Below are positions 6,752-34,212 of a stretch of DNA of 64,000 nt, piece after piece. Where the stretch lies: IMG/VR virus record IMGVR_UViG_3300028569_002417, positions 124,001 to 188,000 of that record; one strand, 5' to 3'. The first letter of the stretch is position 1. Each line of letters begins with the position of its first letter. Below the pieces are notes generated by a model. The model saw nothing but the letters and a program-made list of their open reading frames with translations. It did no database searches and was not told where the DNA came from. A program made the translations under genes and the position numbers.

Positions 6752-6766
6752 TTTTTCTCCTATACG

Positions 6767-6916
6767 TTATTTAATAAATTCACTTGTTTCGACGCATTCT
6801 TTTTGAGCTTGATTATATCCATTATAGTAACCTATTAGATAACCACACGATAAATAAATCATACTTAAAATTAAAAGCATGATGAAATAAGGTATTTTTT
6901 TCAAGAATGACATCAT
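6767..6916 (-). CDS. small membrane protein (49 aa)
   Basis: Manual translation MMSFLKKIPYFIMLLILSMIYLSCGYLIGYYNGYNQAQKECVETSEFIK; one hydrophobic segment; fills the gap in the minus-strand operon. Confidence 0.6.
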   Translation of the reverse strand: MMSFLKKIPYFIMLLILSMIYLSCGYLIGYYNGYNQAQKECVETSEFIK

Positions 6917-6923
6917 GACCTAT

Positions 6924-10777: not shown

Positions 10778-10836
10778 AAAATCCTTATTGATAAATTTAA
10801 CCCATTGCTATCTCGACACCGATATGATTTTCAATT

Positions 10837-11520: not shown

Positions 11521-11523
11521 GAA

Positions 11524-14347: not shown

Positions 14348-17300
14348 TTAGCCTTCTCTCCATCTACTCCAGAATGTATTATTCCTAACCATTTCTTCGT
14401 AGGTATGGGTTGCAAATCTCTTATGTGCAGCGCCAGCCCTTATTCCAGAAAGTCTTACTACGACTTCAATTTCATTGTCGATAATCTTATCACTTTCCAC
14501 ATCAATGATAATAAGATTGTCTCTCACATAAGCTCCGACACTAACTGGCATAGATGGAACAACACTTACAGGTTTTATTGTGTTAAAGGCACAAACTTGT
14601 AACAACCGATCATCAATAAATTTTGAAACATTTTCTGTTTTATGTCCTAATCCACCAACCTTGAATATGACGATATCCTCAAATCTAACTTCTGGCATTT
14701 CTACACAGATAAGTTCAACATATTCAGTTCCTTGTGAAGTAACAACAGGAAGAATCGCATACTTATCACCTTGTGGACCTTGAGGGCCTTGAGATCCTTG
14801 TAATCCATCTGCCCCAGCAGAACCTTGGAATCCTGCTCCTTGAGATCCTTGAGCTCCAGTTGGACCTGTAGGTCCAGTAGCGCCATTTGATCCTGCGGGT
14901 CCCGTAAATCCTATATCCCCTTGATATCCTTTTGTTCCACTTGGAACAAAAATTATGCTCAAAGATTCTTCGTTAAAAGGTGTTATTCCAGAAAGAGGTT
15001 GGACAACAATTTCATAAAAAACTCCATGATCTATTAAATAACCATTAACCGCCATTGTACAAATAGTTGATCCTGCGTTGTTGCCATTGATATAAATCAA
15101 ACCTGTAAAATTAGATCCATCATATAGATCATCAAAATAACTAATCCATAAACTTTGGTCAATACTATTAGCGTCAAATGCAGAAATATAAATTCTAGTA
15201 ACAGAACCTATCGAAAAATCGTTAAAACGAATTTTTCCACTACCGGGAGGAGTAGTTGGCGCATTAGTTACATCAGGATTAAATATATACTTTACACCAC
15301 CTTTATCTCCAATTCCTTGATTTCCTTGTAACCCTTGAAATCCGTCTGCTGGTCCTTGAAGACCTTGATTTCCTTGATTTCCTTGATATCCAAATCCTTG
15401 CAATCCTTGAAAACCTTGAAGACCTTGAAGACCTTGAAGACCTTGAAGACCTTGAAATCCTTGAAATCCTTGATGTCCTTGATTTCCTTGATTTCCTTGG
15501 TAACCTTGATTTCCTTGTTCTCCTTGAAATCCATCTGCTGGTCCTTGAAGTCCTTGATTTCCTTGATTTCCTTGGTAACCTAGACCTTGATAACCTTGAT
15601 TTCCTTGATAACCTTGATAACCTTGATAGCCTTGATTTCCTTGGAATCCGTCTGCTGGCCCTTGGAACCCTTGTCTTCCTTGATTACCTTGGAATCCTTG
15701 GAATCCTTGGAACCCTTGATTGCCTTGATTACCTTGATTTCCTTGGAATCCTGCACCTTGATTTCCTTGATTTCCTTGATTTCCTTGCTCTCCAACATCT
15801 CCTTGATAGCCTTGTTCTCCTATTCCTTGCCATCCTTGATGACCCTGTTCTCCCTGATGACCTTGTGGTCCTAATTCTCCTTGACTTCCTTGAACTCCTG
15901 TAGGTCCAGTATTGCCAGTATCTCCTTGGACTCCCTTAAATCCTTGTTCTCCTACACGTCCTTGACTTCCTTGATGTCCTTGTTCTCCTTGAGGCCCAAT
16001 CTCTCCTTGACGGCCTTGATGGCCTTGATAACCTTGATATCCACGATCTCCTTGATAACCTGCTCCTTGTCTTCCTTGATATCCTTGTTGACCTTGATAT
16101 CCTTGAAATCCTCTTGTTCCTTGAATTGGTCCTACGTTTTCCCATTGCGATCCGTCCCATATAATTCCATCTCCAACTTGTGCTGGGCTGGTATCTGCCC
16201 TAATTGGGGCAGGTACTGGACCAGATCCACAATCAGCATTTGCAGTATCAATCAAAATATACATGTCGCCAAAGCTTGGCGCTAAAATAACACAATTAAT
16301 ATATTGCCATGATTCAGAACCTCTTATTGCTATAGAAGGTCCAATTTCACCTTGATTTCCTTGATTTCCTTGATAACCAATATCTCCTTGATTTCCTTGA
16401 TAACCTTGTTCTCCTTGATATCCAGAACCTTGATATCCTTGATAACCTTGGTTTCCCTGATTTCCTTGATATCCTTGTTCTCCCTGATATCCCTGATCTC
16501 CTTTAGATCCTACTACTCCTTGATGTCCTTGTCTTCCTTGAAGTCCTATTGGCCCTGTATCTCCTAATTCACCTTGTGGTCCTTGTAAACCCGTTCTTCC
16601 TGTTGGTCCTTGTAGACCATCTCTCCCTTGTTGTCCAACACCTCTTTCTCCTTGACGACCCTGAGAACCCTGAGGTCCAGTATCGCCAATATCTCCTTGA
16701 CTTCCTTGACTTCCAATATCTCCTTGGCTTCCTTGGCTTCCAATATTTCCTTGATTTCCTTGATAACCAATATCCCCTTGATTTCCTTGGAATCCTTGAT
16801 TACCTTGTTCTCCCTGATTTCCTTGATTTCCTTGATAGCCAATATCTCCTTGATTTCCTTGGAATCCTTGATCTCCTTGATTCCCCTGATTACCTTGTTC
16901 TCCCTGATTTCCTTGATTTCCCTGATAACCATATCCTTGATATCCTTGATTACCTTGAGATCCTTGATCTCCTTGATCTCCTTGAGCGCCAATAACTCCT
17001 TGGGAACCTTGAGATCCTTGATTGCCTTGATAACCACGTTCTCCTTGATTTCCTTTTTCTCCTTGAGCACCAATTTCTCCTTGGCGACCTTGACGACCTT
17101 GATTTCCTTGTAATCCTATATCGCCCTTTTCTCCTTGAACTCCAATTTCTCCTTGGCGACCTTGACGGCCTTGATTTCCTTGATATCCTTCGCCTTTTTC
17201 TCCTTGTGATCCTTGCGCTCCTGTCAGTCCAAGATCACCTTGATTTCCTTGCAGGCCAATAATGCCTTGCAATCCTTGATATCCTGCTCCTTGTGTTCCT

Positions 17301-18094
17301 TGTGCTCCTGTTAGTCCAAGATCACCTTGATTTCCTTGATTACCTTGATTTCCTTGATATCCTGCTCCTTGTGTTCCTTGTGCTCCTGTCAGTCCAGCAT
17401 CACCTTGATTTCCTTGCAGGCCAATAATGCCTTGCAATCCTTGATATCCTGCTCCTTGTAGTCCTTGCAGTCCTTGTAATCCTTGTTCACCTTGAACTGT
17501 ACTTGGAGAACCTTGAGATCCTTGTGCCCCACGACCTCCTTGGCGACCTTGAAAACCTTGTAGTCCTTGTAATCCTTGAGTTCCATCAATTCCTTGATAA
17601 CCTATAACGCCTTGATATCCAGCACCTTGAAGACCTTGATATCCCTGAAGGCCAATAACGCCTTGATTTCCTATGATTCCTTGATATCCAGCACCTTGAA
17701 GACCTTGATATCCAGCACCTTGATTGCCTTGAAGTCCTTGATCTCCTTGATAGCCTGCTGGTGTTCCTTGATATCCTACAATTCCTTGTAAACCCTGATT
17801 GCCTTGAACTCCTACAATTCCTTGTAAACCTTGATTTCCTTGTGGACCCTGAACTGTACTTGGAGAACCTTGAGCTCCTTGCGAGCCTGCTCTTCCCTGC
17901 GGACCTTGAAGTCCTGTTGTTCCCGGAGTTCCTTGGCTACCTTGTGGACCTTGTTTTGATGCGTCAACTTGTGCGGAAACGACAAAGTCACGAATGTCTT
18001 GTGCGGTAATGCCACCTTCACTATTGTCGGCAAATATGCACAACAATTCTTCTTCTGTTCTTAGTGTTCCCGACTGGTTACATTGATTTGCCAT
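14348..18094 (-). CDS. collagen-like fibre protein 1 (Gly-X-Gln repeats with globular inserts)
   Basis: 1248 aa; hundreds of G-X-Q triplets; shares N-terminal cap and C-terminal EMPEVRFED domain with fibre 2. Confidence 0.9.
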   Translation of the reverse strand: MANQCNQSGTLRTEEELLCIFADNSEGGITAQDIRDFVVSAQVDASKQGPQGSQGTPGTTGLQGPQGRAGSQGAQGSPSTVQGPQGNQGLQGIVGVQGNQGLQGIVGYQGTPAGYQGDQGLQGNQGAGYQGLQGAGYQGIIGNQGVIGLQGYQGLQGAGYQGVIGYQGIDGTQGLQGLQGFQGRQGGRGAQGSQGSPSTVQGEQGLQGLQGLQGAGYQGLQGIIGLQGNQGDAGLTGAQGTQGAGYQGNQGNQGNQGDLGLTGAQGTQGAGYQGLQGIIGLQGNQGDLGLTGAQGSQGEKGEGYQGNQGRQGRQGEIGVQGEKGDIGLQGNQGRQGRQGEIGAQGEKGNQGERGYQGNQGSQGSQGVIGAQGDQGDQGSQGNQGYQGYGYQGNQGNQGEQGNQGNQGDQGFQGNQGDIGYQGNQGNQGEQGNQGFQGNQGDIGYQGNQGNIGSQGSQGDIGSQGSQGDIGDTGPQGSQGRQGERGVGQQGRDGLQGPTGRTGLQGPQGELGDTGPIGLQGRQGHQGVVGSKGDQGYQGEQGYQGNQGNQGYQGYQGSGYQGEQGYQGNQGDIGYQGNQGNQGEIGPSIAIRGSESWQYINCVILAPSFGDMYILIDTANADCGSGPVPAPIRADTSPAQVGDGIIWDGSQWENVGPIQGTRGFQGYQGQQGYQGRQGAGYQGDRGYQGYQGHQGRQGEIGPQGEQGHQGSQGRVGEQGFKGVQGDTGNTGPTGVQGSQGELGPQGHQGEQGHQGWQGIGEQGYQGDVGEQGNQGNQGNQGAGFQGNQGNQGNQGFQGFQGFQGNQGRQGFQGPADGFQGNQGYQGYQGYQGNQGYQGLGYQGNQGNQGLQGPADGFQGEQGNQGYQGNQGNQGHQGFQGFQGLQGLQGLQGLQGFQGLQGFGYQGNQGNQGLQGPADGFQGLQGNQGIGDKGGVKYIFNPDVTNAPTTPPGSGKIRFNDFSIGSVTRIYISAFDANSIDQSLWISYFDDLYDGSNFTGLIYINGNNAGSTICTMAVNGYLIDHGVFYEIVVQPLSGITPFNEESLSIIFVPSGTKGYQGDIGFTGPAGSNGATGPTGPTGAQGSQGAGFQGSAGADGLQGSQGPQGPQGDKYAILPVVTSQGTEYVELICVEMPEVRFEDIVIFKVGGLGHKTENVSKFIDDRLLQVCAFNTIKPVSVVPSMPVSVGAYVRDNLIIIDVESDKIIDNEIEVVVRLSGIRAGAAHKRFATHTYEEMVRNNTFWSRWREG
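17006..17182. repeat. 177-bp near-identical block, copy 1 (copy 2 at 19412-19588)
   Basis: By-eye alignment shows 2 mismatches. Confidence 0.85.
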
Positions 18095-18118: not shown

Positions 18119-20509
18119 TCAGCTTTTTTTCCAACTATCCCAGAATGTATTGTTCTTTATCATGTTTTCATATGTGTGTTGTGCGAACCTTCTACCAGCA
18201 TTGCCTATTCTAATGCCAGAAAGTCGAATATTTACAGAAACAAATTCATCAATTAAACAATCATCTTTTGCCCTTACATATATTTTATTATTTGAAACTT
18301 CAGCGCCGATCAATATTGGTCTGGAAGGCATTGCGCTAACAACTTGTATTGAATCATATTCACAAACCTTGATAAAATTTTCATCTATGTTGAAAACAGA
18401 AAGTACATTATTTTTACCTTCTCTACCAATATTAACAACAATTAAATCTTCAAATCTTACTTCTGGCATTTCCATACATGCCAATTCAATATATTTTTCA
18501 GAAGATCCATCATAAACAGGCAAAATAGCATTTTTAGAACCCGGCTGACCAGTTTCCCCTCTTTCGCCCTGATCTCCTTTTCGACCTTGTTGCCCTTGTT
18601 GGCCTGTAGAACCTTGATTCCCTCTATCACCTTTATCGCCTTTTACTCCTTGACGACCTTGTTCACCTTTTGGTCCTTGCAGTCCTTGATTTCCTTGACT
18701 TCCTTGATTTCCTTGTTCGCCTTGTTGACCTTGCTCACCTTGATCGCCTTGTTCGCCTTTTTCTCCTTGATGTCCTTGGTTTCCTTGATTTCCTTGATGT
18801 CCTTGATGTCCTTGATGTCCTTGGCGACCTTGATGTCCTTGATGTCCTTGGCGACCTTGGTGTCCTTGATGTCCTTGATGTCCTTGGTGTCCTTGGCGAC
18901 CTTGGTGGCCTTGATTGCCTTGGTGGCCTTGATTGCCTTGGTGGCCTTGATTGCCTTGGTGTCCTTGATTGCCTTGGTGTCCTTGATTTCCTTGATTTCC
19001 TTGATTGCCTTGATTTCCTTGATGGCCTTGATTTCCTTGGTGTCCCTGATTGCCTTGGTGTCCTTGATTTCCTTGATTTCCTTGGTGTCCTTGAAAACCT
19101 TGAAAACCTTGAAATCCTTGATTTCCTTGAAAACCTTGAAATCCTTGGTTTCCTTGAAAACCTTGAAATCCTTGGTTTCCTTGAAAACCTTGAAATCCTT
19201 GTCTACCTTGAAAACCTTGTCTTCCTTGAAATCCTTGATATCCTTGAAATCCTCTTTCTCCTTGAAAACCTTGTCTTCCTTGATATCCTTGATATCCTTG
19301 ATGACCTTGAAATCCTCTTTCTCCTTGAAAACCTTGTCTTCCTTGAAATCCTTGATTACCTTGATTGCCTCTTTCTCCTTGATATCCTTGCCTTCCTTGA
19401 AATCCTTGGCGACCTTGAGATCCTTGATTGCCTTGATAACCACGTTCTCCTTGATTTCCTTTTTCTCCTTGAGCACCAATTTCTCCTTGACGGCCTTGAC
19501 GACCTTGATTTCCTTGTAATCCTATATCGCCCTTTTCTCCTTGAACTCCAATTTCTCCTTGGCGACCTTGACGGCCTTGATTTCCTTGTAGTCCTTGATC
19601 GCCTTTTTCTCCTTGTGGACCAGTAGTTCCTATTACTCCTTGTCGTCCTTGATTGCCTTGATTTCCTTGAAAACCCTGACTACCTTTTTCACCTTGATAT
19701 CCTGATCCTTGATTTCCTTGATTTCCTTGATTTCCTTGATTTCCTTGAAAACCTTGACGGCCTTGATTGCCTTGAAATCCTGATCCCTGATTACCTTGAA
19801 ATCCTATTGATCCTTGACGACCTTGAGATCCTTGTGTTCCAAAAGCGCCTTGAAGTCCTTGAAAACCCGCTCCTTGAGAACCCGAAGATCCTTGTCGTCC
19901 TTGTTGACCTTGAACTCCAGTTGTTCCTTGCTGTCCTTGAACTCCTTTTCCTCCCTGTAATCCTTGTAGTCCTTGAACTCCTTGTAATCCTTGAGAACCA
20001 TCAAGACCTTGCAAACCTTGATATCCAGCACCTTGTAAACCTTGTAAGCCTAGATTTCCCTGAAGTCCTTGATATCCAGCACCTTGTAATCCCTGTAAAC
20101 CTTGTAGGCCAAAGCCTTGTTCGCCTTGTTCACCTTGTTCTCCCTGATCTCCTTGCGATCCTTGATAACCTGCTGGAGTCCCTTGATAACCAATAATTCC
20201 TTGATTACCTTGAACTCCAATAATTCCTTGTAAGCCTTGATTGCCTTGTGGACCTTGAACAGTACTTGCTGATCCTTGAGAACCTTGAGCTCCTTGTGAA
20301 CCTGCTCTTCCCTGTGGACCTTGAAGTCCTGTTCCCCCAGATGAACCTTGGCTACCTTGTGGACCTTGTTTTGATGCATCAACTTGTGCTGAAACAACTA
20401 AATCACGAATATCTTGTGCGGTAATACCACCTTCGCTATTGTCGGCAAATATGCACAACAATTCCTCTTCTGTCCTTAGTGTTCCCGACTGGTTACATTG
20501 ATTCGCCAT
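18119..20509 (-). CDS. collagen-like fibre protein 2 (Gly-X-Gln repeats)
   Basis: Long G-X-Q tract; start placed at MANQCNQSG (20509) to match the paralog. Confidence 0.9.
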   Translation of the reverse strand: MANQCNQSGTLRTEEELLCIFADNSEGGITAQDIRDLVVSAQVDASKQGPQGSQGSSGGTGLQGPQGRAGSQGAQGSQGSASTVQGPQGNQGLQGIIGVQGNQGIIGYQGTPAGYQGSQGDQGEQGEQGEQGFGLQGLQGLQGAGYQGLQGNLGLQGLQGAGYQGLQGLDGSQGLQGVQGLQGLQGGKGVQGQQGTTGVQGQQGRQGSSGSQGAGFQGLQGAFGTQGSQGRQGSIGFQGNQGSGFQGNQGRQGFQGNQGNQGNQGNQGSGYQGEKGSQGFQGNQGNQGRQGVIGTTGPQGEKGDQGLQGNQGRQGRQGEIGVQGEKGDIGLQGNQGRQGRQGEIGAQGEKGNQGERGYQGNQGSQGRQGFQGRQGYQGERGNQGNQGFQGRQGFQGERGFQGHQGYQGYQGRQGFQGERGFQGYQGFQGRQGFQGRQGFQGFQGNQGFQGFQGNQGFQGFQGNQGFQGFQGFQGHQGNQGNQGHQGNQGHQGNQGHQGNQGNQGNQGNQGHQGNQGHQGNQGHQGNQGHQGNQGHQGRQGHQGHQGHQGHQGRQGHQGHQGRQGHQGHQGHQGNQGNQGHQGEKGEQGDQGEQGQQGEQGNQGSQGNQGLQGPKGEQGRQGVKGDKGDRGNQGSTGQQGQQGRKGDQGERGETGQPGSKNAILPVYDGSSEKYIELACMEMPEVRFEDLIVVNIGREGKNNVLSVFNIDENFIKVCEYDSIQVVSAMPSRPILIGAEVSNNKIYVRAKDDCLIDEFVSVNIRLSGIRIGNAGRRFAQHTYENMIKNNTFWDSWKKS
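19412..19588. repeat. 177-bp near-identical block, copy 2
   Basis: Matches 17006-17182. Confidence 0.85.
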
Positions 20510-20519
20510 TTTAGCCTTG

Positions 20520-20861
20520 TTATTTGAAACTACTTGCAAATGATACGTTGAACTGTTTGTTTGTTCCGCCTATAGAATCTTGCTTTGCATTTTGACATTT
20601 TCGATAAGCCTTTAGATAAGGAATTGGATATGAAACAAATGCTCCATCACTTCTATTGGCTACGCAAATCTCAATATTTTTATAAGGAGGACACGAAAAA
20701 TAAGACTCTGGCTTGAGACAACAATCAACCAAGCCTGCTGGAATTTGACAAAAATTAGTATTTATGTTTGCCATATTGTTTACTTGAGTTAAATCCTGAC
20801 CTTTTTCAATTTGTTTAAGAGCAACATCTGGTACTAAAGCACCTTTCAAATAAGTATCCAC
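20520..20861 (-). CDS. Cys-containing hypothetical protein heading the fibre operon
   Basis: GTG 20861 follows SD AAGGAGG; CTAAATA motif upstream. Confidence 0.65.
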   Translation of the reverse strand: MDTYLKGALVPDVALKQIEKGQDLTQVNNMANINTNFCQIPAGLVDCCLKPESYFSCPPYKNIEICVANRSDGAFVSYPIPYLKAYRKCQNAKQDSIGGTNKQFNVSFASSFK

Positions 20862-20901: not shown

Positions 20902-21195
20902 CTATTTTTTAGCCTCTTTTGCCATAAGCCTTATAATGTCTTCCAAAGTACCATCTCCACTCGATATTTTATCTTTCACTTGCATCTGAACATCATCATT
21001 CAAATCCCTAAACTCGCCCAAAACTTCAAGAGAACTAATTAAATTTTCTGGAGGTTTCCACATATTCAAAGACGTTGATATATCATATTTTTCAGATTTA
21101 TCATTAGAATTAAGCTTTCCAATCACTAAATCCTTATAAAACTCATAATCTTTCTGATCATCTTCGAGCCAAATTCTAAAAGATAATTTATTCAT
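20902..21195 (-). CDS. hypothetical protein with capsid-targeting-like N-terminus
   Basis: MNKLSFRIWLED. Confidence 0.75.
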   Translation of the reverse strand: MNKLSFRIWLEDDQKDYEFYKDLVIGKLNSNDKSEKYDISTSLNMWKPPENLISSLEVLGEFRDLNDDVQMQVKDKISSGDGTLEDIIRLMAKEAKK

Positions 21196-21243
21196 AATCG
21201 ACTTCCGGTAAATAGTATTGATGCTTGTTCATATATAGATTTA

Positions 21244-22056
21244 ATGAACAGATTGTCATTCTCTTACTGGCTAGTCAATGAAATGGCTGATTATGGATTT
21301 GAAGGCGTATCCAGTCAAATCATGGGCGGAACTGATATCATGAAAGGTGACGAACTTTTCAAAATAATCAAACCAAGCGTTATAATTAGTGAACTTTTGC
21401 AAATGCCTTCCTTAGGACAACTTGAAGGTGTTCAACTTTATAATGATGAAATTCAATGGGGAACTGAACCCGGAGCACTAAAAATACAAATGTCTCCTTT
21501 AGGTTCCATGAGAGTGGTAACTAGAAGATTAACCAAAGACCTAGAAGGCAATAATGCTTGGGTTTGCAAAAAAGTTCATCCAATTAACGATTATAAAGAC
21601 CAAGACCATGAATTAAAAATAGCAAATCATGTCTATGAGAACTTAACAAAAATTAATGAAGAAGATATTGATTCACCAGATAAAGATTACAACGAAATTG
21701 AACGACTTGCACAAAAATTGTGGTATACAACTAAAAAGCAACATCCTTCTTACATTATGTTTCCAACACAGTTAAGGAAACAGGATGAAAATTATTACAA
21801 GCTTGTCTATGAATTCAGAGGCCAAGGTGTTGGATCTCCATATAACGGAAAAACTGGAAGGGCTGAACAGTTCGACATTGATTTGATCTACTATCCGAAA
21901 AAAGGCATGATTAGATGCTTTGGCTACGATATTGACAGTAGCTCTAGAGAAAGAAAGTTTTATGTTCAGCCTTCTGAGTGGGATGAAATGTTTTCCCCAA
22001 AGCAAGAAGACAACGATATAGTTGAAAATATTGTTAAACTTTTCTTGCAGTACTAA
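21244..22056 (+). CDS. hypothetical protein with capsid-targeting-like N-terminus
   Basis: MNRLSFSYWLVNE; ATATATAGA 4 nt before ATG. Confidence 0.8.
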   Translation: MNRLSFSYWLVNEMADYGFEGVSSQIMGGTDIMKGDELFKIIKPSVIISELLQMPSLGQLEGVQLYNDEIQWGTEPGALKIQMSPLGSMRVVTRRLTKDLEGNNAWVCKKVHPINDYKDQDHELKIANHVYENLTKINEEDIDSPDKDYNEIERLAQKLWYTTKKQHPSYIMFPTQLRKQDENYYKLVYEFRGQGVGSPYNGKTGRAEQFDIDLIYYPKKGMIRCFGYDIDSSSRERKFYVQPSEWDEMFSPKQEDNDIVENIVKLFLQY

Positions 22057-22072
22057 ATTCTCAGCATATAAT
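22045..22072 (+). promoter_or_regulatory. sigma70-type promoter for pyrB
   Basis: TTGCAG, 16 nt, TATAAT. Confidence 0.45.
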
Positions 22073-22107
22073 TAATTGTCAAGCAAAAAAAATTACGAGA
22101 TGAACAA

Positions 22108-23040
22108 ATGCGTCATTTCCTGTCTATTTCCGACTTCACTAAAGATCAAATTGAAACTGTTTTAGAAATTGCGACAGACATTGAAAAGAATTGGGAATTT
22201 TGTCGCCAAATGAACAACAAATGTATTTCTTCGTTTTTTGCAGAACCTTCTACTAGAACCAGATTTTCATTCGAGAGAGCAATGCATTGGCTTGGAGGAA
22301 GATGTGTCACAGCTGCTGATGCATCTTCAAGTAGCAGTTTAATCAAAGGCGAAAGTCTCAAGGACACATTTCGCACTCTTGGTCAGTATTCTGACGCTAT
22401 CATTATGCGTCATGGTGATTCAAGCTGGCCAGAAATAGCAAGAGCATATTCTCGTGTTCCAGTAATTAATGCAGGAAGTGGATCTGGAGAACATCCAACA
22501 CAAGCACTTCTTGACCTTCATACAATTAAACAAAAATGGAAAGATGTCAGTAATCTCAAGGTTATGTTGTGTGGAGATCTTAAAAACGGAAGAACAATAC
22601 ACAGTCTTATTGAACTTCTTCACATTTATGGTTGCAAAATATATTATTGCGCTGCCACTGATCATGCAGATTGTGATTTGAGCATACCTGAAAAATACCT
22701 TGCAAATATTCCTTGTAAAAATGTTGAAATATGTGACGCAAATGACATTCTTCCAGAAATCGATGTCATTTATATGACCAGAATCCAAAAAGAAAGATTC
22801 AAAGGTGTCAGTGGTTCTCTAGATTTCTTTAAGATTGACAAAACCAATATCAATAAAATCAAAGAAAACGCTGCTATTCTTCATCCTCTTCCTAGAAACG
22901 AAGAAATTAGTGAAGATATAGATGATGATTCTCGTGCTGACTATCACGAAAGACAAGTCAGAAATGGTCTTTATATAAGAACTGCTCTTTTAGATTATAT
23001 TCTTTACACAAGTCCTTTACACAGATACTACAGATCATAA
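22108..23040 (+). CDS. pyrB: aspartate carbamoyltransferase catalytic subunit
   Basis: FFAEPSTRTRFSFE, HPTQALLD, GDLKNGRTIHS, YMTRIQKER, HPLPR. Confidence 0.95.
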   Translation: MRHFLSISDFTKDQIETVLEIATDIEKNWEFCRQMNNKCISSFFAEPSTRTRFSFERAMHWLGGRCVTAADASSSSSLIKGESLKDTFRTLGQYSDAIIMRHGDSSWPEIARAYSRVPVINAGSGSGEHPTQALLDLHTIKQKWKDVSNLKVMLCGDLKNGRTIHSLIELLHIYGCKIYYCAATDHADCDLSIPEKYLANIPCKNVEICDANDILPEIDVIYMTRIQKERFKGVSGSLDFFKIDKTNINKIKENAAILHPLPRNEEISEDIDDDSRADYHERQVRNGLYIRTALLDYILYTSPLHRYYRS

Positions 23041-23052
23041 TCATAAAAACAA

Positions 23053-23799
23053 TTAATTGTTTTCTAAAGGGAATAACTGACGGAATTTTTGCTCAACATC
23101 TTTGTTGATGCATGGCAAATAAACTTTGATGTCGAAATTAATTTTTTTATAATCATCTTCAGTGAAGATTGATTTCATGAATGGTGAAATAGCAATGTAA
23201 TATGGAGATATTTTAGCAAGGTTTATCCAACGGAAAATATTATTGTTGATATAACATTCTCGATATTTTTCAATTGTCAGTTCGGAACCGAATGTTTTAA
23301 CTAAAAATTCTTTTGTCTTTTCAATTCCATCAATTGCTTTTTGGAATCCGATTCCACTTGCAACAGATTCTGCTGGTTTATTTTTGACTGAATCGTATCT
23401 TTTCTTCCAAAGCTTCCATCTTTTCCAAGCTTTTTCACCAACTAGACAATTTGGGTCAATAAGAGGATGATCTTTGCCAGAATTGATATATTTGAGAACT
23501 TCTAACTGAGCACGGATATAAAGTGGATATTCATTATTCTCAAGAATTCCCTGAGTTTCTCTTGCAAGCTTATATGCTATTTTGAATATAAGAGACTTTC
23601 TAGGGTCACCCTTTCTCATTGTTGAGTGACGATAATCAGGAAATGTTTTTCTGCTTTGTTCAAGCCACATTGCAGAAAGATTGCAAGCTTTTGCCTCAAG
23701 ATCGTCCATATTGTACTTTTCAACTGCATCTAAAAGCCACATGTAGTCATCCTCTTTTTTTTCAGACTTCATGATACTCCTTTGAATTTGTGAAAGCAA
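23053..23799 (-). CDS. hypothetical protein
   Basis: 248 aa ORF filling the interval; no motif recognised. Confidence 0.8.
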   Translation of the reverse strand: MLSQIQRSIMKSEKKEDDYMWLLDAVEKYNMDDLEAKACNLSAMWLEQSRKTFPDYRHSTMRKGDPRKSLIFKIAYKLARETQGILENNEYPLYIRAQLEVLKYINSGKDHPLIDPNCLVGEKAWKRWKLWKKRYDSVKNKPAESVASGIGFQKAIDGIEKTKEFLVKTFGSELTIEKYRECYINNNIFRWINLAKISPYYIAISPFMKSIFTEDDYKKINFDIKVYLPCINKDVEQKFRQLFPLENN

Positions 23800-23811
23800 G
23801 GTATGTATTAA

Positions 23812-24699
23812 ATGAAAATAGCATTTTGCCCATTAGTTAGTCGTGATATGGACAAGGCAATTCGTGCCACAAATTCTTGTCGTAATCAATTTCCAACCGA
23901 ATCCATTGAAATAGAAACAGTTGCAATTATCAATTCTCAGAATCAAGAATTTGTTTCTCAGTTTTCAGAATGGTGTGAAAAAGAGAATGTCAAATATAAA
24001 ATTACTCAGTCAAATGGTACTCCGAGTAAGGGAAAAAATTCTGTATTAAATTTTTTACAAAACTCAAATTATGATGGTCTGAGTCTTACTGATGGAGACG
24101 ACCTATTTTACCCAACAGGTGCAATTCAAATTGAAAAACATATGAAACATCACCCCGGAACTGATGTTTTGATTGTTAAACCTGCCGATCATGTTTCAAA
24201 TGAAAAAACAAATACTTCTAAGGAAGTTGGAGAAAATAAATATGCAGTATGCTGGGGTATGAATGTTGTTAATCTTGGATATAAATATGGACCCGGAAAG
24301 CACGATATATTTACATCTGGACACAAAGCAGCAAGAAATTTAGGTGGACATGTCTTTTATAGCAAAAAATTAAGCAATATGATAAGATATGACGAAGAAC
24401 AGGTTTTAGGAGAAGATTTACTTCTTGAATTTAATCTTCTTAAACTTCATCAACAAAATAAAATATCATTTTGGTTAAGTTTTGCTAGTGATGTTCAGAT
24501 GTTAGACAGAACAAAGCAAGAAAGCATACAAAATCTTAAGAATGAAAGTTTAGGTAAAATTTGTTTTGAAAGATTGATTAAAAAAGTAAAAGAAATATTA
24601 CCTGAAGATAGAAGTTCATTTAATGAATTGCCAGTAGAGTTTCCCGAAATTATTTTTAATCATGATCGAAAAATTGAATGGTTGAAACAAGTCTTTTGA
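23812..24699 (+). CDS. GT-A fold glycosyltransferase-like protein
   Basis: SNGTPSKGKNSVL, TDGDD DxD-like motif, GEDLL. Confidence 0.7.
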   Translation: MKIAFCPLVSRDMDKAIRATNSCRNQFPTESIEIETVAIINSQNQEFVSQFSEWCEKENVKYKITQSNGTPSKGKNSVLNFLQNSNYDGLSLTDGDDLFYPTGAIQIEKHMKHHPGTDVLIVKPADHVSNEKTNTSKEVGENKYAVCWGMNVVNLGYKYGPGKHDIFTSGHKAARNLGGHVFYSKKLSNMIRYDEEQVLGEDLLLEFNLLKLHQQNKISFWLSFASDVQMLDRTKQESIQNLKNESLGKICFERLIKKVKEILPEDRSSFNELPVEFPEIIFNHDRKIEWLKQVF

Positions 24700-24723
24700 C
24701 ATTCCCATAAAAGATGGTATAAT
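24696..24723 (+). promoter_or_regulatory. consensus sigma70 promoter with extended -10
   Basis: TTGACA (24696-24701), 16 nt, TATAAT (24718-24723), TG at 24715-24716. Confidence 0.8.
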
Positions 24724-24729
24724 AGATAT

Positions 24730-25150
24730 GGCAGTCCCAAGCTTTGGCGTGAAAGGTCTCGTACTACCTTGAATGTTGAAGTTGCTAAACCTGTGAGGCT
24801 CTCACCAAGAGCGGGTCTTTGTAGTTGTTTCTACAACAAATGCTGTAACGGGCAGCATTGTTCTCACAAGCAACATAGGTCAAGCCAGATAGCATCGATG
24901 CTGACTTCTATGACTATAGTGTATCCCACTAGCAAACACTCATGTCATAGACTATCTGGTTTTAAGATTGTTGCAAAAGAAAGTACGCTACTCTTCATCA
25001 CCACTAATCTTTTTGCTGGAGTAAGTAAGATTAAAGAACAAAAACAAAGCTTAAACGCTAAATTTTTGCTCTACTAATCTTGTTTACTCAATAAGTCATT
25101 ATTCTTAATGATTTATACAGTAATAACCATTAGGGTCAGCATCCCGTTCT
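24730..25150 (+). ncRNA. candidate large structured non-coding RNA, class unknown
   Basis: Starts just after a consensus promoter; at least 9 nested helices plus long-range complementarities; no credible ORF; 3' end uncertain. Confidence 0.6.
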
Positions 25151-25296
25151 GGAATTTGATTGTAAATAAAAGTTTCTCAAAAATATTTTCATGTTGTTAA
25201 TGAAGAATTTGTTTAGTATGACATTTGTAAATCCGTTCATCAATGAATGAAGGGATAAGGCTAGAAGGCTCAAAATTGACTTAGGAGTGATTATCT

Positions 25297-26631
25297 ATGA
25301 ACTTTGAGTCTCTGGCCAAGTTGCTTACAGAAATCGACCACAAGACCCTATTCTTGCGATTTAATCCTGAGGTTCTTGATTTCACAGACAAGGAATCGTC
25401 TTGTGAGCTTCAGTTCTTTATTCCTGATGGTCGAATCTTCAAGATTGAGTTGAAAGATGAGACTATGCCTTTGATTCTAAGCTTCTTGGGTATATCTTTG
25501 TTTGAAAAAGATTGCAAAATATTTACTTGGAATTGGAAGTGTTTTGCTTCTTATGTTTTTGCTAAGAAGAACAAGTTTTATGACATAAAGGCTTCTATTG
25601 TTGATATCAAGATAATTGAGTCATTTAGCGGTATAAAGAAGAATGCTCCTGAAAGTTATGTTGAGGCTTTCAATAGAATAAAGAATTTAGTTTCTTCTGG
25701 TTTGTGGAAGGAAAGTGAGAATATTTACAAGAACATTCATCTTCCTTTGATGACAACAGTTATACCAGCATTGGAGAAGATAGGTATTGTTGATTCTTCT
25801 TTGCATTCTAAGGTTCATGCTTATTACGAGATTGATGGGCAGGACAATGGTCGATTGAAGTGTTTCGGTGCCTTCAAGAATTCTTATGTTCCTCACACAA
25901 TGGGATCTGAACTGAAAGAAGTTTTGAGGCCTGTTGGTTACGATAATTTTTTTATGAGTTTTGACTTTAAGGGGATGGAAGTATTTGTTTTGGCGCATTT
26001 GAGTAAGGATCGAAATTTATTGAGACTTTGCGATCAGGAAGACATATATCTTTCCTTGTATAGGGTTTTAATTGGACAGGAGAAGGAAAAAAATGATAGG
26101 GAATTGGCAAAAAAATGTTTTTTGCCGGTTATATATGGACAGTCAGCCCGATCACTTTCTTTGAGATGTGGTTTGGCGGCTGATGTGGCCGAAAAAGTGG
26201 TGGAACGAATTAGTTCTTTGTTTCCTGCTGCTATTTCATTTGTTGCCGATTGCGAAAGCAAAGTTAAAAAAGATGGATATGCAAAGGATTTCTTCGGTAA
26301 GAGAAGAACAAACTTTGAGGTTGGGAAGGAATACCTTGCCAGAAATTTTGCAGTGCAGTCTCCTGCTGCGACGATATGCCTAGAGAAACTTATCAGTTTA
26401 TATTTTTGTTTGCAAAAACTCAATGAGTCATTGAAAGATAAAGCTGAAATTGCTTATACTGTTCATGACGGATATGTTGTTTATGCCACAAAGGAAAACT
26501 GGAAGCAAGTTTACAAAAAATGTATGGATGCTTTGACTAGTGAATCTGAGTTGTGTCCCGGCCTTAAGCTGAAAGTTTCATGCAAAGGAGGACGCAATCT
26601 AAATGATCTAAAGGTTATAAAAAACGGCTAG
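25297..26631 (+). CDS. polA: divergent family A DNA polymerase, thumb deleted, exonuclease degenerate
   Basis: DNGRL, motif A SFDFKGMEVFVLAHLSKD, motif B RELAKKCFLPVIYG, NFAVQSPAA, motif C TVHDGY. Confidence 0.85.
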   Translation: MNFESLAKLLTEIDHKTLFLRFNPEVLDFTDKESSCELQFFIPDGRIFKIELKDETMPLILSFLGISLFEKDCKIFTWNWKCFASYVFAKKNKFYDIKASIVDIKIIESFSGIKKNAPESYVEAFNRIKNLVSSGLWKESENIYKNIHLPLMTTVIPALEKIGIVDSSLHSKVHAYYEIDGQDNGRLKCFGAFKNSYVPHTMGSELKEVLRPVGYDNFFMSFDFKGMEVFVLAHLSKDRNLLRLCDQEDIYLSLYRVLIGQEKEKNDRELAKKCFLPVIYGQSARSLSLRCGLAADVAEKVVERISSLFPAAISFVADCESKVKKDGYAKDFFGKRRTNFEVGKEYLARNFAVQSPAATICLEKLISLYFCLQKLNESLKDKAEIAYTVHDGYVVYATKENWKQVYKKCMDALTSESELCPGLKLKVSCKGGRNLNDLKVIKNG

Positions 26632-30880: not shown

Positions 30881-31289
30881 ATGGTTTCTTGGTCTTGCTG
30901 AATATGTTTCAACTGCATCAAAAGACCCTTCAACAAAAGTCGGTGCTGTGATAGTTGACGATGAACGCCGTGTGGTATCACTTGGATACAACGGTCTTCC
31001 TCGTGGAGTAGACGACACAGAAGAAAGACTTAACAATCGTGACCTTAAATATCGCATCATTGTTCATGCTGAGAGGAACAGCTTGTTGTTTGCAAGAGGT
31101 TCCGTTAAAGGATGTACAATTTACACATATCCCATGATGCCATGTGCTGTGTGTGCTTCTATGATTATTCAATCTGGAATTAAAAGGGTTGTTGCTCCAA
31201 GAAGCGATAACCCTCGTTGGCAGTCTGACATAGAACTTTCAATGCAGTTGTTTGGAGAGGCAGGAGTGGAAGTTGAATTTGTTGATTAA
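30861..31289 (+). CDS. dCMP deaminase (ComEB-like)
   Basis: SKDPSTKVGA, GYNG, HAE, PCAVC. Confidence 0.95.
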   Translation: MATDWNKWFLGLAEYVSTASKDPSTKVGAVIVDDERRVVSLGYNGLPRGVDDTEERLNNRDLKYRIIVHAERNSLLFARGSVKGCTIYTYPMMPCAVCASMIIQSGIKRVVAPRSDNPRWQSDIELSMQLFGEAGVEVEFVD

Positions 31290-31879
31290 GAAGACCAAAT
31301 ATTGATCTGTTTTTCAAATTTACATATTTGCTTTTTATAAAATAAATCAACTCTTTTTTTCAGTTGAGATTCCCAATCTTCTTGACATTCTGAAGTAAGA
31401 AGAAATTTCTTGTTTTTATCTTTTATTTGAAGTTGTCCATATCCAAGAGCTCCAATTGTGAGATTATTCCAGTCTAATTCACAAATATTAAAAACCTTTA
31501 CATCTAAAATTTCCACTAAATCTTTATTTCTTTTGTAATCAACAAAAATATAATTTAAGCTTTGGTTTTTGTTTTGGAAAAACTTTTTGAGTCTTTTTAC
31601 CGATATAAGGTTTGGCATCGAAAATCCAGCTTTTTCTTGGACATGATGTGTCTTGACATCGTAGAAAACATATTTTTTTTCAAATGGAATTATAAAGTCT
31701 TCTATTGATCTTTTGCTTTTGGCGGGGGAGAATCGTTCTTTGAATTGATATTCAACTATTTTAGAGCAAAGATTTTCTATCTTATCTCCTACAGCACGAT
31801 GAGAAAAAGTCTCGTCAATTGTGAAATTTTTGAGATTTTCAGCGATTATATTTTTTATTTCTAAATTCAAAATCATCAA
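31286..31879 (-). CDS. PD-(D/E)XK restriction endonuclease-like protein (HincII/EcoRV-like)
   Basis: RAVGDKIE, IEDF...YDVKT, PNLISVKRL, GQLQ. Confidence 0.55.
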   Translation of the reverse strand: MMILNLEIKNIIAENLKNFTIDETFSHRAVGDKIENLCSKIVEYQFKERFSPAKSKRSIEDFIIPFEKKYVFYDVKTHHVQEKAGFSMPNLISVKRLKKFFQNKNQSLNYIFVDYKRNKDLVEILDVKVFNICELDWNNLTIGALGYGQLQIKDKNKKFLLTSECQEDWESQLKKRVDLFYKKQICKFEKQINIWSS

Positions 31880-32883
31880 ATGATCTCTTCTTTTATCAAT
31901 TCTAAATTTGTAGATGAAATAAGTCCAGCGATAGGATATTTTCTTATGAGATTTTCAAAACCTTGAATAATTTGATCAGATTTAAGTTCTGTGATGCAAG
32001 GTTTTTGCATCTCTTTGCTTTTTGGGCAAACAATGCAAAGATAACATGGTCCGCATTCCCAATCGCCGTTATCACGATGTTTTTGCACAAGCTCAAAATC
32101 GTAATGTCTACCGTAAACCTTTCCATCAGTGAAAGAAAAAACACCAACTAGAGGTTTTTTTAACGCACCAGCAAGATGAAATGTTCCAGTATCAATTGAT
32201 ATTACATAATCTGCCGCTGCAACTAGCCCTTTCCAAGATTCAGGTTCAATTTTTATAAATTGTGGAATATTTATGCTTGTAAAAATTTCAAGAGGTTCAT
32301 TGTGAATGGTATAAACAAAAAATCCTTTATCACATAGTTTTTTGCATACTTCATATATTTGTGTGTCTGTTAAGCTTTTTGATTGTCCAAACATACATTT
32401 GGTTGATTTGGCCGCAACTAAAACCATTGGAAGCTTTTTAGTGTTTATTTCATATAATTTTTCAATATAAAATTCTTTTTCTTTGCATTCCATGAAGCAG
32501 TTATGGTTTGAAAGCTTAACACCACAATGATTGGCCCAGATATCGCTACGGTGAATGGTGTTTTTACCTCCCATTTTACTTTCATGCACACGACACACTG
32601 TCGTTATGTCATATGATGCTCCATATGTTCTTTCATTGATTTCTTCTATTGCCACTGTTTTTGCATAAGGATGATCTTTAGCAAATTCTAAATATGTTCT
32701 AGGACAGGCATATGTTAAATTAATTTCAGGCATTACCTTATGAAAATCTTCAAACATCATTCTTTGCATAATGATGTCGCCATATCCACCTGCTTTTCTC
32801 TTGATGAGGACTTTATTCCTTCTGAGAAAATGTTCTTTTATCGTGATTGGACAAATAGTTTTTTTCTTAACGTAAGGAAACAT
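31876..32883 (-). CDS. GT9 (heptosyltransferase-like) glycosyltransferase
   Basis: GGYGDIIM, ADYVISIDTGTFHLAGALKKPLVGVF. Confidence 0.85.
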   Translation of the reverse strand: MFPYVKKKTICPITIKEHFLRRNKVLIKRKAGGYGDIIMQRMMFEDFHKVMPEINLTYACPRTYLEFAKDHPYAKTVAIEEINERTYGASYDITTVCRVHESKMGGKNTIHRSDIWANHCGVKLSNHNCFMECKEKEFYIEKLYEINTKKLPMVLVAAKSTKCMFGQSKSLTDTQIYEVCKKLCDKGFFVYTIHNEPLEIFTSINIPQFIKIEPESWKGLVAAADYVISIDTGTFHLAGALKKPLVGVFSFTDGKVYGRHYDFELVQKHRDNGDWECGPCYLCIVCPKSKEMQKPCITELKSDQIIQGFENLIRKYPIAGLISSTNLELIKEEII

Positions 32884-33057
32884 ATATATCTTGTCTCTTT
32901 TTTACTACCTCAGTATTACAATTATACAAGTTCCAGCTGTCTGCATGGATGTTTGATCTTTATGTAATGCTTGAAACCCTAATGCAGGAAAAGGATGCTT
33001 CAAGGCACTTTTCAAAGGTAATTCAACTAAGTTTAATTGAAAACTTGAAATTGAGAC

Positions 33058-33089
33058 AGAGAGGTTAACCTTGTTGGTTCAACCTCTCT
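33058..33089 (-). terminator. hairpin immediately after the glf stop
   Basis: AGAGAGGTT/AACCTCTCT plus AACC/GGTT; no clear U-tract. Confidence 0.45.
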
Positions 33090-34212
33090 ATACAAATGTT
33101 CTAAACTTAGTTAATGCCGAAGCAATTGTCTGGTCGATGTCCAGATATTTATATTCACCAAGCCTTCCTCCAAAAGTAATTTCTTTGTGATTTGTTTTAA
33201 GATTGGCATATCTGTTGTATAAGTCACTGTTTTTATCATCTCTGATTGGGTAGTAAGGCTCAGGATGATCTTTGAATGCAACTGGGATGTCATAGGAAAC
33301 AACAGTTTCTTCTTTTGAATGTGGTTTTACTTCATAGTGTTTTGGAGCATTTTTGTAAAAATGCTTGTGTTCTATTGTTCTTATGTGTGGCACAGACATA
33401 TCTGTGTGGTTAAAAACAGCATTTCCTTGATAGTCACCATATATTGTTTTGTGTTCAAATCTTAAAGTGTTGTATTCCAAAGATCCAAACTCATAGTCGT
33501 AAAATTTATCTATCGGTCCTGTGTAAACCAGATGTTTGGCATAATCACGCCATTTGTTTCTAATTGTGAAAAAATCAGTGTTGAGTTCTGTTTTAATTCC
33601 ATCAAGCATATTTTTTATTGTTGCTGAGTATCCTTCATTTGGAATGCCTTGATATTTTGTTGTAAAATAATTTTCTTCATAAGTGAGTCTGATTGGCAGT
33701 CTCTGAATTATTGAGGATGGAAGATCTCTAGGTTCTTTCATCCATTGTTTTTTAGTGTATCCATAAAAGAATAATTCATAGATTTCCTTGCCAACTCTGT
33801 CTAAAGCCCATTCTTCAAAGTTTCTAGGATTTTCGCATGGTATTCGCACATCTTGTAGTTTGCGGTATGCTTCTTCTGGAGTGACAACTCCCCATAGTTG
33901 ATGAAGAGTCATCATGTTAATTGGAAATGAATAAACATTTCCTTGAGACAAAACTTTTGGTTTATTGATGAAAGGGTTGATTTTCGTGAATTTATTGATG
34001 AAATCCCATACTTCTTCGCTTTGAGTGTGGAATATGTGTGCTCCATATTCGCTTACAATGATGCCATTGTCCCATTTTCGGTCATATGTCGCACCAGCAA
34101 TGTGATTATTTTTATCAATTACAAGGCACTTTTTACCAGCATCTGCTGCTTTTCTTGCAAAGGTAGCGCCAAAGAATCCTGATCCCACAATCATGAAGTC
34201 AAATTCAGGCAT
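33088..34212 (-). CDS. glf: UDP-galactopyranose mutase
   Basis: IVGSGFFGA, HIAG, YGAHIFHT, YFTTKYQGIP, EPYYP, GRLGEYKYLD. Confidence 0.95.
   Translation of the reverse strand: MPEFDFMIVGSGFFGATFARKAADAGKKCLVIDKNNHIAGATYDRKWDNGIIVSEYGAHIFHTQSEEVWDFINKFTKINPFINKPKVLSQGNVYSFPINMMTLHQLWGVVTPEEAYRKLQDVRIPCENPRNFEEWALDRVGKEIYELFFYGYTKKQWMKEPRDLPSSIIQRLPIRLTYEENYFTTKYQGIPNEGYSATIKNMLDGIKTELNTDFFTIRNKWRDYAKHLVYTGPIDKFYDYEFGSLEYNTLRFEHKTIYGDYQGNAVFNHTDMSVPHIRTIEHKHFYKNAPKHYEVKPHSKEETVVSYDIPVAFKDHPEPYYPIRDDKNSDLYNRYANLKTNHKEITFGGRLGEYKYLDIDQTIASALTKFRTFV

Follow-up and report, generated by a model that had tools for sequence, protein, structure and literature searches.

Large noncoding RNAs whose folds are conserved in the absence of a known function have been described in both bacteria and phages. 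Termed GOLLD, ROOL and OLE, these ornate RNAs are several hundred nucleotides long, contain many covarying helices and pseudoknots, and were recognized by comparative genomics before any function was known; GOLLD and ROOL are carried by phages. Other structured RNAs are encoded next to the polymerase or nuclease that they serve, including the retron msr/msd with its RT, telomerase RNA with TERT, and omega-RNA with TnpB. Structured RNAs are also linked to replication enzymes in other ways. In ColE1, a promoter-driven RNA of about 0.5 kb, RNA II, serves as a primer that is extended by DNA polymerase I, and the phage T4 replication proteins gp43 and gp32 appear to control their own mRNAs through RNA structures located upstream (gp32 leaders are noted in PMC10690425).

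The locus described here lies in a 64,000-nt stretch of IMG/VR virus record IMGVR_UViG_3300028569_002417 (positions 124,001 to 188,000), hereafter the window. Between a 295-aa ORF (23812-24699) and the gene for a family-A DNA polymerase is a 597-nt, ORF-poor gap (24700-25296), the largest gap between ORFs of at least 100 aa in the window once a 102-aa TTG ORF is set aside. An earlier note proposed that this gap may encode a new large structured phage RNA behind a consensus promoter, and this main reading is supported by homologue alignment, covariation, the absence of coding signal and the absence of any Rfam match. The gap is a gene for an intricately folded noncoding RNA of about 450 nt, conserved at this position across many uncultivated large phages, and belongs to a family without an Rfam counterpart. 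The RNA gene and the new family are close to certain, whereas the function is inferred only; the overall account is held with moderate confidence, and the role proposed below with less. The features of the locus are collected in the table.

Features of the polA-upstream RNA locus, in window coordinates
Feature	Position	Strand	Description
Sigma-70 promoter	24696-24723	+	-35 TTGACA (24696-701), 16-nt spacer, extended -10 TGgTATAAT (24715-23; TATAAT 24718-24723); stop codon TGA of the upstream ORF (24697-99) lies inside the -35
Conserved RNA core	24730-25176	+	About 447 nt; 5ʹ end inferred from the promoter (expected start near G24730), 3ʹ end inferred from where conservation stops
Hairpin P-a	24741-24782	+	Outer stem 24741-50/24773-82, inner stem 24753-57/24766-70, loop 24758-65
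PK1 5ʹ strand	24760-24765	+	CGUACU, in the P-a loop; pairs with 24982-24987
Domain I	24784-24884	+	Multi-helix junction: H1 24789-92/24877-80, H2 24793-97/24863-67, hairpin a 24798-802/24808-12, hairpin b 24824-27/24834-37, hairpin c 24839-44/24854-59; conserved joiners AAACCUG and GUCUUUGUAG
5-nt unit, copy 1	24813-24817	+	GGGUC
PK2 5ʹ strand	24848-24852	+	ACGGG, loop of hairpin c; pairs with 25143-25147
Pc 5ʹ strand	24870-24875	+	GCAACA, between H2 and H1; pairs with 24969-24974, forming a pseudoknot with H1
Domain II	24885-24959	+	Outer stem 24885-92/24952-59, asymmetric internal loop, inner hairpin 24907-14/24944-51 with a variable tip
PK3 5ʹ strand	24900-24905	+	GCUGAC, internal loop of domain II; pairs with 25135-25140 (GUCAGC)
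Joiner and Pc 3ʹ strand	24960-24974	+	Conserved joiner UUUUAAGAU (family consensus GAUUUAGGA), then UGUUGC (24969-74)
PK1 3ʹ strand	24982-24987	+	AGUACG
3ʹ domain	25013-25123	+	Three-way junction: closing stem S0 25013-18/25118-23; long arm S2 25019-33/25075-89 carrying the small hairpin AGC-UUAAAC-GCU (25048-59); arm S3 25091-101/25106-116
3ʹ zipper strand	25133-25147	+	5-nt unit copy 2 GGGUC (25133-37), PK3 3ʹ strand (25135-40), PK2 3ʹ strand CCCGU (25143-47)
Terminal hairpin	25151-25176	+	Stem 25151-57/25170-76, conserved loop GAUUGUAAAU; not followed by a terminator-like U run
Spacer	25177-25296	+	Poorly conserved, A+T-rich; polA Shine-Dalgarno AGGAG 25283-87
Family-A DNA polymerase	25297-26631	+	444 aa, no 3ʹ-5ʹ exonuclease domain

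The promoter matches the sigma-70 consensus at 12 of 12 positions, with TG upstream of the -10, and is the only 12/12 site in 23.5-26.5 kb. Homologous promoters sit at the same distance in close relatives, with 12/12, 11/12 and 10/12 matches. The gap folds far better than shuffled sequences, with an MFE of -160.2 kcal/mol against -124.6 +/- 6.0 (z = -5.9) and 0 of 100 shuffles as good. While a blastn search of the gap against 50,697 GenBank phage records found no match, the gap is conserved at the DNA level upstream of the same exonuclease-less polymerase in at least 30 distinct metagenomic phage sequences, always on the polA strand. DNA conservation of the gap is 92%, 78%, 76% and 74% in relatives whose PolA is 95%, 75%, 67% and 69% identical, respectively, and an nhmmer search returned 35 unique hits. 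The polymerase itself matches Pfam PF00476, gives profile hits to the Taq, Bst and Klenow polymerase domains, and has 232 homologues. The clade is broad: contigs reach 460 kb, and PolA identity to the window goes down to roughly 37-50% in the loci that the covariance models detect. The replication context includes a DnaB-like helicase and gp32-like and RecA-like genes. The upstream 295-aa ORF looks like a GT-A glycosyltransferase with a DGDD motif, and homology to a PolA-like 387-aa protein was rejected.

Covariation supports about 17 helices and four long-range pairings. For domain I, two covariance models (R1 and R2) were built; across 29 distinct sequences, 98.8% of cells are paired against 37-40% in slid controls, and 19 of 23 pairs show changes on both sides. 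These models find the domain only on the polA strand, about 370-570 nt before the ATG and once per locus. Positions 24784-24884 of the window score 89.1 bits (E = 3e-25), although they were part of the seed alignment. The G+C content of the domain is 0.47 against about 0.34 around it. In hairpin P-a, whose stems come from the MFE fold, the inner stem covaries by direct reading (AGG/CCU, UGGU/ACCA, GGC/GCC, GUUG/CAAC). In domain II, the outer stem is fully paired in 8 of 16 sequences against 14 of 234 cross pairings, and the inner stem is 85-87% paired. Independent MFE folds of 12 homologues with unlike sequences give the same 3ʹ domain architecture, with z from -2.7 to -7.9, and its small hairpin covaries. 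Support for the terminal hairpin is weaker: stem sequences differ but stay complementary in relatives, yet the count on the sequence-only alignment is only 58-67%. RNAalifold on sequence-only alignments of the variable parts returned nothing or almost nothing, and variable helices therefore score poorly by this count.

The long-range pairings tie these domains together, with a single 3ʹ strand zipping onto both the domain II internal loop and the loop of hairpin c. The core of PK1 changes together in both strands across 30 homologues (GUAC/GUAC, GCAC/GUGC, GUGC/GCAC, GCGC/GCGC, AUAC/GUAU, GUAU/AUAC, GCGU/ACGC, AUGC/GCAU) and is 93% paired against at most 61% slid in 14 sequences. Pc is represented by at least 19 different complementary sequence pairs at the fixed position; 12 of 16 are fully paired within the same sequence against 15 of 232 in cross comparisons. 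Broad-window duplex scans for PK1 and Pc had no statistical power and were replaced by the narrow self-against-cross tests and direct reading. PK2 occurs as CGGG/CCCG, CGAG/CUCG, CAGG/CCUG and CAAG/CUUG in 29 of 29 homologues, and the same holds in clades that the model does not detect. PK3 is 93-95% paired against at most 32% slid, with GCUG/CAGC changing to GCCG/CGGC.

Of the ten helices in the earlier note, seven are supported by covariation or by conserved folds in homologues (24753-57/24766-70, 24839-45/24853-59, 24870-75/24969-74, 24885-92/24952-59, 24908-14/24944-50, 25019-33/25075-89 and 25093-101/25106-14), and an eighth, the small tip helix 24917-21/24927-31, lies in a segment present only in the window's own clade. 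Two are wrong or mis-registered: 24793-97/24801-05 conflicts with the covarying H2 (24794-97/24863-66) and hairpin a, and 24819-24/24831-36 should be hairpin b, with UUUGUAG left single-stranded. Of its two possible pseudoknots, AACGGG/CCCGUU (PK2) is confirmed by compensatory changes at two positions, whereas 24739-46/25045-52 is not conserved, being 50-59% paired, close to slid controls whose best offset gives 46-48%.

An additional feature of the family is a 5-nt unit present in two distant copies, which is identical between copies in 29 of 29 homologues, with 7 variants. A scan of aligned columns and of each sequence for a complementary 5-mer found no consistent partner in cis, and one homologous locus, L020, has none inside the RNA. 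Antiparallel pairing of the two copies fits GAGUC and GUGAC but fails for GAGAC, GAACC and the A.C ends of AAGUC, while the joiner GAUUU fits many sequences but does not compensate the U-to-A change. Matches in the polA coding region are explained by conserved codons. A separate motif, ACTGAGAYGG, was rejected as a general phage promoter, as it occurs once per locus, at the RNA 5ʹ end.

No known RNA class in Rfam matches the locus. Searches of Rfam 15 at gathering score and at E up to 10, with the window and with three homologues, gave only noise, including for RNase P RNA, introns, GOLLD, ROOL, OLE, HEARO and raiA, and ARAGORN found no tRNA or tmRNA in the window. No description of this RNA was found in the literature, although overlap with an unnamed candidate in the supplements of a 10,006-candidate phage RNA survey cannot be excluded. 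Unlike the T4 operators, which are single hairpins or pseudoknots of tens of nucleotides that overlap the ribosome-binding site, this RNA is separated from the start codon by an unconserved spacer. The conserved tertiary pseudoknots are not a feature of ColE1 RNA II. As with the retron, telomerase and omega-RNA systems, a structured RNA gene with its own promoter is kept adjacent to one particular nucleic-acid enzyme across deep divergence; however, the partner here would be a family-A DNA polymerase, for which no RNA subunit is known, and no template-like or guide-like segment was identified.

Selection is inferred to act on a compact tertiary fold, so the molecule works as a folded RNA and not as a message or a simple hairpin operator. 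The RNA is strictly syntenic with polA and has its own strong promoter, and in some clades polA has a separate, even leaderless, promoter. From these observations, the favored but tentative reading is that the RNA is a dedicated partner of the replication module, most plausibly acting with the adjacent PolA as a cofactor, scaffold or structured initiator RNA. Nothing shows physical or functional contact with PolA, and synteny alone could reflect co-regulation. Moreover, all loci were fetched through PolA, so RNA copies away from polA would have been missed apart from one narrow exact-pattern scan; in viral contigs this returned only four already known family members among 19 hits, and in genome contigs all 80 of the 118 hits that were tested with the model were chance matches.

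A less likely but possible alternative is that the RNA is a cis-regulatory leader that tunes the transcription, stability or translation of polA, whether by binding PolA itself, by sensing a metabolite such as nucleotides, or by metabolite-dependent self-cleavage. Its position and orientation directly upstream of polA are invariant in every clade. Furthermore, no terminator is called after the RNA and no promoter above 7/12 lies between the RNA and polA in the window, where the RNA is probably also the 5ʹ part of the polA transcript. However, about 450 nt with four pseudoknots is far beyond any known leader, the unconserved spacer varies in length (the zipper lies 93-244 nt from the ATG), and no conserved pairing with the ribosome-binding site or a terminator was seen by eye. 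In L020 and a second homologous locus, L077, polA has its own promoter (such as TTGACT-17-CATAAT) 6-7 nt before a start codon that lacks a Shine-Dalgarno, so those mRNAs are unlikely to contain the RNA.

It is doubtful, though not excluded, that the transcript is an origin or primer RNA that forms a persistent hybrid near its 3ʹ end and, after processing, primes leading-strand synthesis as RNA II does for ColE1. The RNA lies at the head of the replication module beside a Pol I-family enzyme, sits between divergently transcribed genes in most relatives, and lies just downstream of the cumulative GC-skew minimum at about 21-24 kb. In addition, two relatives without the RNA carry a divergent PolA-like protein at the same place. 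However, primer RNAs are not known to need conserved tertiary pseudoknots, and the GC-skew turn coincides with a switch of gene orientation and so is ambiguous. No RNase H, iterons or unwinding element were identified, although iterons were not specifically tested, and from context alone there is no evidence of an origin, of RNase H processing or of an RNA-DNA hybrid. Equally doubtful is a more far-reaching possibility, in which the RNA is an integral subunit or cofactor of the polymerase, or a new ribozyme acting in replication initiation, and would occupy the place and role that the PolA-like accessory protein holds in RNA-less relatives. The duplicated unit would then be two docking sites for one common partner strand, such as a primer, a template end or a protein-bound oligonucleotide.

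A very divergent member of a known RNA class is highly unlikely. The size is similar, and the order H1(5ʹ), Pc(5ʹ), H1(3ʹ), domain II, joiner, Pc(3ʹ) seems to mirror P3-P7-P3ʹ-P8-J8/7-P7ʹ of group I introns, with a purine-rich joiner preceding the Pc 3ʹ strand. However, H2 encloses three hairpins, unlike P4-P6, there is no exon-binding helix, and the RNA does not interrupt a gene, since the upstream neighbors differ between clades and are often on the other strand, and polA is complete downstream. The loose resemblance to RNase P CR-V raised in the earlier note also fails: GCUUAAACGC is a covarying hairpin and not a P4 strand, and CR-I is absent. Finally, a coding role for the 102-aa TTG ORF (24769-25077), or for a read-through extension of the 295-aa ORF, whose frame stays open past its TGA as far as 25077, can be rejected because the TTG ORF is interrupted in the closest, 92%-identical relative (longest open stretch 54 aa), substitutions are spread evenly over codon positions (for example 26, 33 and 22), 1-nt indels are common, ORFs in relatives lie on different strands and frames, there are no Pfam or PHROG hits, and the paired columns covary as RNA.

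The covariance models allow this RNA to be annotated in many metagenomic phage genomes in which gene callers place spurious ORFs. The family also shows a kind of covariation that ordinary base pairing does not explain, in which two distant 5-mers always change to the same sequence, and this may point to an unrecognized interaction mode or a partner in trans. Large RNAs with several conserved pseudoknots are rare, and almost all of those understood so far are ribozymes or cores of ribonucleoproteins. This one is widespread in uncultivated large phages and is locked to the gene of a minimal Pol I-type polymerase, and it therefore offers a directly testable case of a possible RNA partner of DNA replication in phages.

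The window comes from a low-G+C (about 35%) contig of a large uncultivated phage, with identical copies in IMG/VR and JGI contigs of 168 and 225 kb. Its genes include those for two very large proteins (1248 and 806 aa) that are dominated by collagen triple-helix repeats and are probably fibres, in a region of raised G+C and strong strand skews. Dense clusters of glycosyltransferases (GT1/4, GT2, GT9, GT25), SAM methyltransferases, a sulfotransferase and UDP-galactopyranose mutase point to extensive glycan synthesis or modification by the phage. Additionally, the window carries a replication and recombination set consisting of a DnaB-like helicase, gp32-like, RecA/UvsX-like, ThyX, dCMP deaminase and a stand-alone DEDD (RNase T/DnaQ-type) exonuclease, the last a candidate separate proofreading subunit for the DNA polymerase described below. 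A full-length PrkA-type serine kinase and a TnsA-like endonuclease-domain protein are both unusual cargo for a phage.

A perfect TTGACA-16-TATAAT promoter with an upstream TG, the only 12/12 site in the 3 kb scanned, is followed by 597 nt leading up to the start of a 444-aa family-A DNA polymerase (PolA) that lacks an exonuclease domain. This is the longest stretch in the window without an ORF of 100 aa, apart from a 102-aa TTG ORF. As RNA, 24730-25296 folds to -160.2 kcal/mol, against -124.6 +/- 6.0 for dinucleotide shuffles (z = -5.9). The 295-aa ORF just upstream, which is present only in the window's clade and close relatives, looks like a GT-A glycosyltransferase with a conserved DGDD motif but no Pfam hit, and its TGA stop sits inside the -35 hexamer of the promoter. 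Further upstream, a 248-aa protein of unknown function lies next to an aspartate carbamoyltransferase (ATCase). The order ATCase, this gene, polA is kept even in the 595-kb phage LR756511, where the 248-aa protein is 40% identical. The cumulative GC-skew minimum also lies just upstream of the RNA; however, it coincides with the switch from minus-strand to plus-strand genes and is thus ambiguous as an origin signal.

The polymerase has hundreds of metagenomic relatives, and 113 loci (designated here by L numbers) were retrieved through it. The gap is alignable at the DNA level in relatives whose PolA is 95% to about 56% identical and is as well conserved as the protein, with nucleotide identities of 92%, 78%, 76% and 74%. 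Iterated nhmmer searches recovered 35 unique copies. Almost every locus has an ORF-poor gap of about 550-700 nt before polA, in which the chance ORFs differ in strand and frame. In the frame of the 102-aa ORF, substitutions are evenly spread over codon positions (26/33/22 against locus L004 and 29/26/21 against L017), single-nucleotide indels are common, and the ORF is cut to 54 codons in the 92%-identical L002. Furthermore, there are no Pfam or PHROG hits. Although the frame of the upstream 295-aa gene stays open through its TGA for 126 more codons, as far as 25077, the same arguments exclude read-through.

Positions of the RNA elements and of neighbouring or related features (window coordinates unless a locus is named)
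Feature	Position	Strand	Sequence or description
Promoter of the RNA	24696-24723		TTGACA-16-TATAAT, upstream TG
Segment folded as RNA	24730-25296		
Domain I	24784-24884		H1 (ACCU/AGGU), H2 and three hairpins
PK1	24760-65 with 24982-87		CGUACU (loop of hairpin P-a) with AGUACG
PK2	24848-52 with 25143-47		ACGGG (loop of hairpin c) with CCCGU
Pc	24870-75 with 24969-74		GCAACA (between H2 and the 3' strand of H1) with UGUUGC (following domain II)
PK3	24900-05 with 25135-40		GCUGAC (internal loop of domain II) with GUCAGC
3' domain	25013-25123		Three-way junction; includes helices 25019-33/25075-89 and 25093-101/25106-14
Terminal hairpin	ends the conserved block at about 25176		Conserved loop GAUUGUAAAU
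5-nt unit, two copies	24813-24817 and 25133-25137		GGGUC; 320 nt apart
295-aa ORF	23812-24699	+	GT-A glycosyltransferase-like
248-aa protein	23053-23799	-	Unknown function
Aspartate carbamoyltransferase	22108-23040	+	
Cumulative GC-skew minimum	about 21000-24000		
Collagen-repeat proteins	14348-18094 and 18119-20539	-	1248 and 806 aa
DEDD exonuclease	13057-13686	-	
Glycosyltransferase-rich clusters	639-12975 and 31286-35038		
PrkA-type serine kinase	60123-62201	+	
TnsA-like endonuclease-domain protein	48443-49141	-	
5' motif of the RNA in other clades	L077:2799-2808, L090:2359-2368, L026:3566-3575 and others		ACUGAGAYGG
polA promoters	L020:3960-4000, L077:3270-3308		TTGACT-16/17-CATAAT
PolA-like protein in RNA-less relatives	L001:2784-3947 (LR756511.1) and L060:2567-3682		371-387 aa

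Domain I was defined by RNAalifold and two covariance models. On 29 distinct sequences, 98.8% of cells are paired, against 37-40% when partners are slid by 1-3 columns; 19 of 23 pairs show changes on both sides, and 0 of 500 shuffles reach the observed covariation score. Four long-range pairings are also supported. Across 30 homologues, the core of PK1 changes together (GUAC/GUAC, GCAC/GUGC, GUGC/GCAC, GCGC/GCGC, AUAC/GUAU, GUAU/AUAC, GCGU/ACGC and AUGC/GCAU), and in 14 sequences it is 93% paired. At least 19 different complementary pairs occupy the fixed positions of Pc, and in a self-against-cross test, 12 of 16 sequences pair fully with their own partner, against 15 of 232 non-self combinations. 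Pc is therefore a pseudoknot with H1. PK3 is 93-95% paired against at most 32% slid, with GCUG/CAGC alternating with GCCG/CGGC. In PK2, which had been proposed in the earlier note as the second of two possible pseudoknots, the middle positions change together in 29 of 29 sequences (CGGG/CCCG, CGAG/CUCG, CAGG/CCUG and CAAG/CUUG), and the same rule holds in clades that the model does not detect.

The outer stem of domain II is fully paired in 8 of 16 sequences, against 14 of 234 cross combinations. The 3' domain, folded independently in 12 homologues with very different sequences, always gives the same three-way junction, made up of a closing stem, a long arm bearing a small hairpin with the conserved loop UUAAAC, and a second hairpin; the two helices of this domain listed in the table had already been read by eye in the earlier note. 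Helices in variable parts score poorly on the sequence-only MAFFT alignment, because that alignment mis-registers them by 1-2 columns. Other elements proposed in the note fail. The pseudoknot 24739-46/25045-52 is 50-59% paired, close to the slid controls, helix 24793-97/24801-05 conflicts with H2 and hairpin a, and helix 24819-24/24831-36 is in the wrong register. The loose resemblance to RNase P fails on CR-I, on P4 and on the models. Rfam 15 gives nothing at gathering score in the whole window and nothing meaningful at E up to 10 in the region or in three divergent homologues, and ARAGORN finds no tmRNA.

Model hits are always on the polA strand, once per locus, about 370-570 nt before the ATG, and occur in loci whose PolA is about 37-50% identical to the window's at the low end. 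Further clades (those of L031, L063 and L110) carry recognisably related versions with the same PK1, Pc and PK2 logic. An exact-pattern scan of viral contigs recovered only four already known members, and in bacterial and archaeal genomes none of the 80 loci that were tested, out of 118 hits, passed the model, although this pattern is too narrow to prove absence.

A sigma-70-like promoter of at least 10/12 precedes the RNA in 36% of loci, against 0.7% of control windows. In the window's own clade, this promoter sits about 60 nt before domain I, whereas elsewhere it sits about 100-115 nt before, because those RNAs have an extra 5' hairpin and a conserved ACUGAGAYGG motif that occurs once per locus. 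This motif, followed by a small hairpin with a CUCU-rich loop, forms the 5' end of the RNA in other clades and is replaced in the window's clade by a promoter moved about 45 nt closer. Between the RNA and polA, some clades have a clear promoter; those of L020 and L077 end 6-7 nt before a start codon without a Shine-Dalgarno, which suggests leaderless polymerase mRNAs in these phages. The window has none better than 7/12 and no terminator. The RNA therefore appears to be a transcription unit of its own in the family, but in this phage it probably also heads the polA transcript.

One feature of the family is unexplained. The 5-mer just after hairpin a recurs exactly once downstream, immediately before the PK3 and PK2 strands. 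In 29 of 29 model-aligned homologues, the two copies are identical while the unit itself varies (GGGUC, AGGUC, GAGUC, GUGAC, GAGAC, AAGUC and GAACC), and the L064 and L065 clades show the same with UAGACCC and UUGAACC. Identity of this kind, as opposed to complementarity, is what a shared partner or mutually exclusive pairing would produce. However, no covarying partner was found in cis, and pairing of the copies with each other is contradicted by three variants.

A second observation bears on function. The only two lineages with this PolA but without the RNA are LR756511 (L001), with its relatives, and L060. Directly upstream of polA, they have a 371-387-aa protein that has no Pfam hit, and the two versions are 34% identical to each other. 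Its invariant residues line up with family-A motifs A, B and C (D217, K280 and H352-D353-S354). A confident AlphaFold model (pLDDT 90.7) matches only family-A polymerases in the PDB, with a Foldseek probability of 1.0 and E about 1e-6, though TM-scores are low at 0.26-0.40; the motifs and predicted fold are those of a very divergent family-A polymerase. The protein was not found in the 64-kb window or in the flanks of RNA-bearing loci, and its wider family is common in large viral contigs but is adjacent to this PolA only in the LR756511 clade. An RNA and a polymerase-like protein thus alternate at one locus, which is suggestive but rests on few independent lineages.

Taken together, these data show a promoter-driven, conserved, non-coding, multiply pseudoknotted RNA family with no Rfam counterpart. 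Among alternatives to the role favored here, a polA leader is possible but less likely, and an origin or primer RNA is more doubtful still; both remain live, and they are not fully exclusive. Coding and membership of a known RNA class are essentially excluded. From selection on a compact fold, it is inferred that the RNA acts as a structured molecule. Strict linkage to polA, a promoter of its own and the replication context make a role with the replication module, most plausibly with PolA, the best guess, although this inference is tentative.
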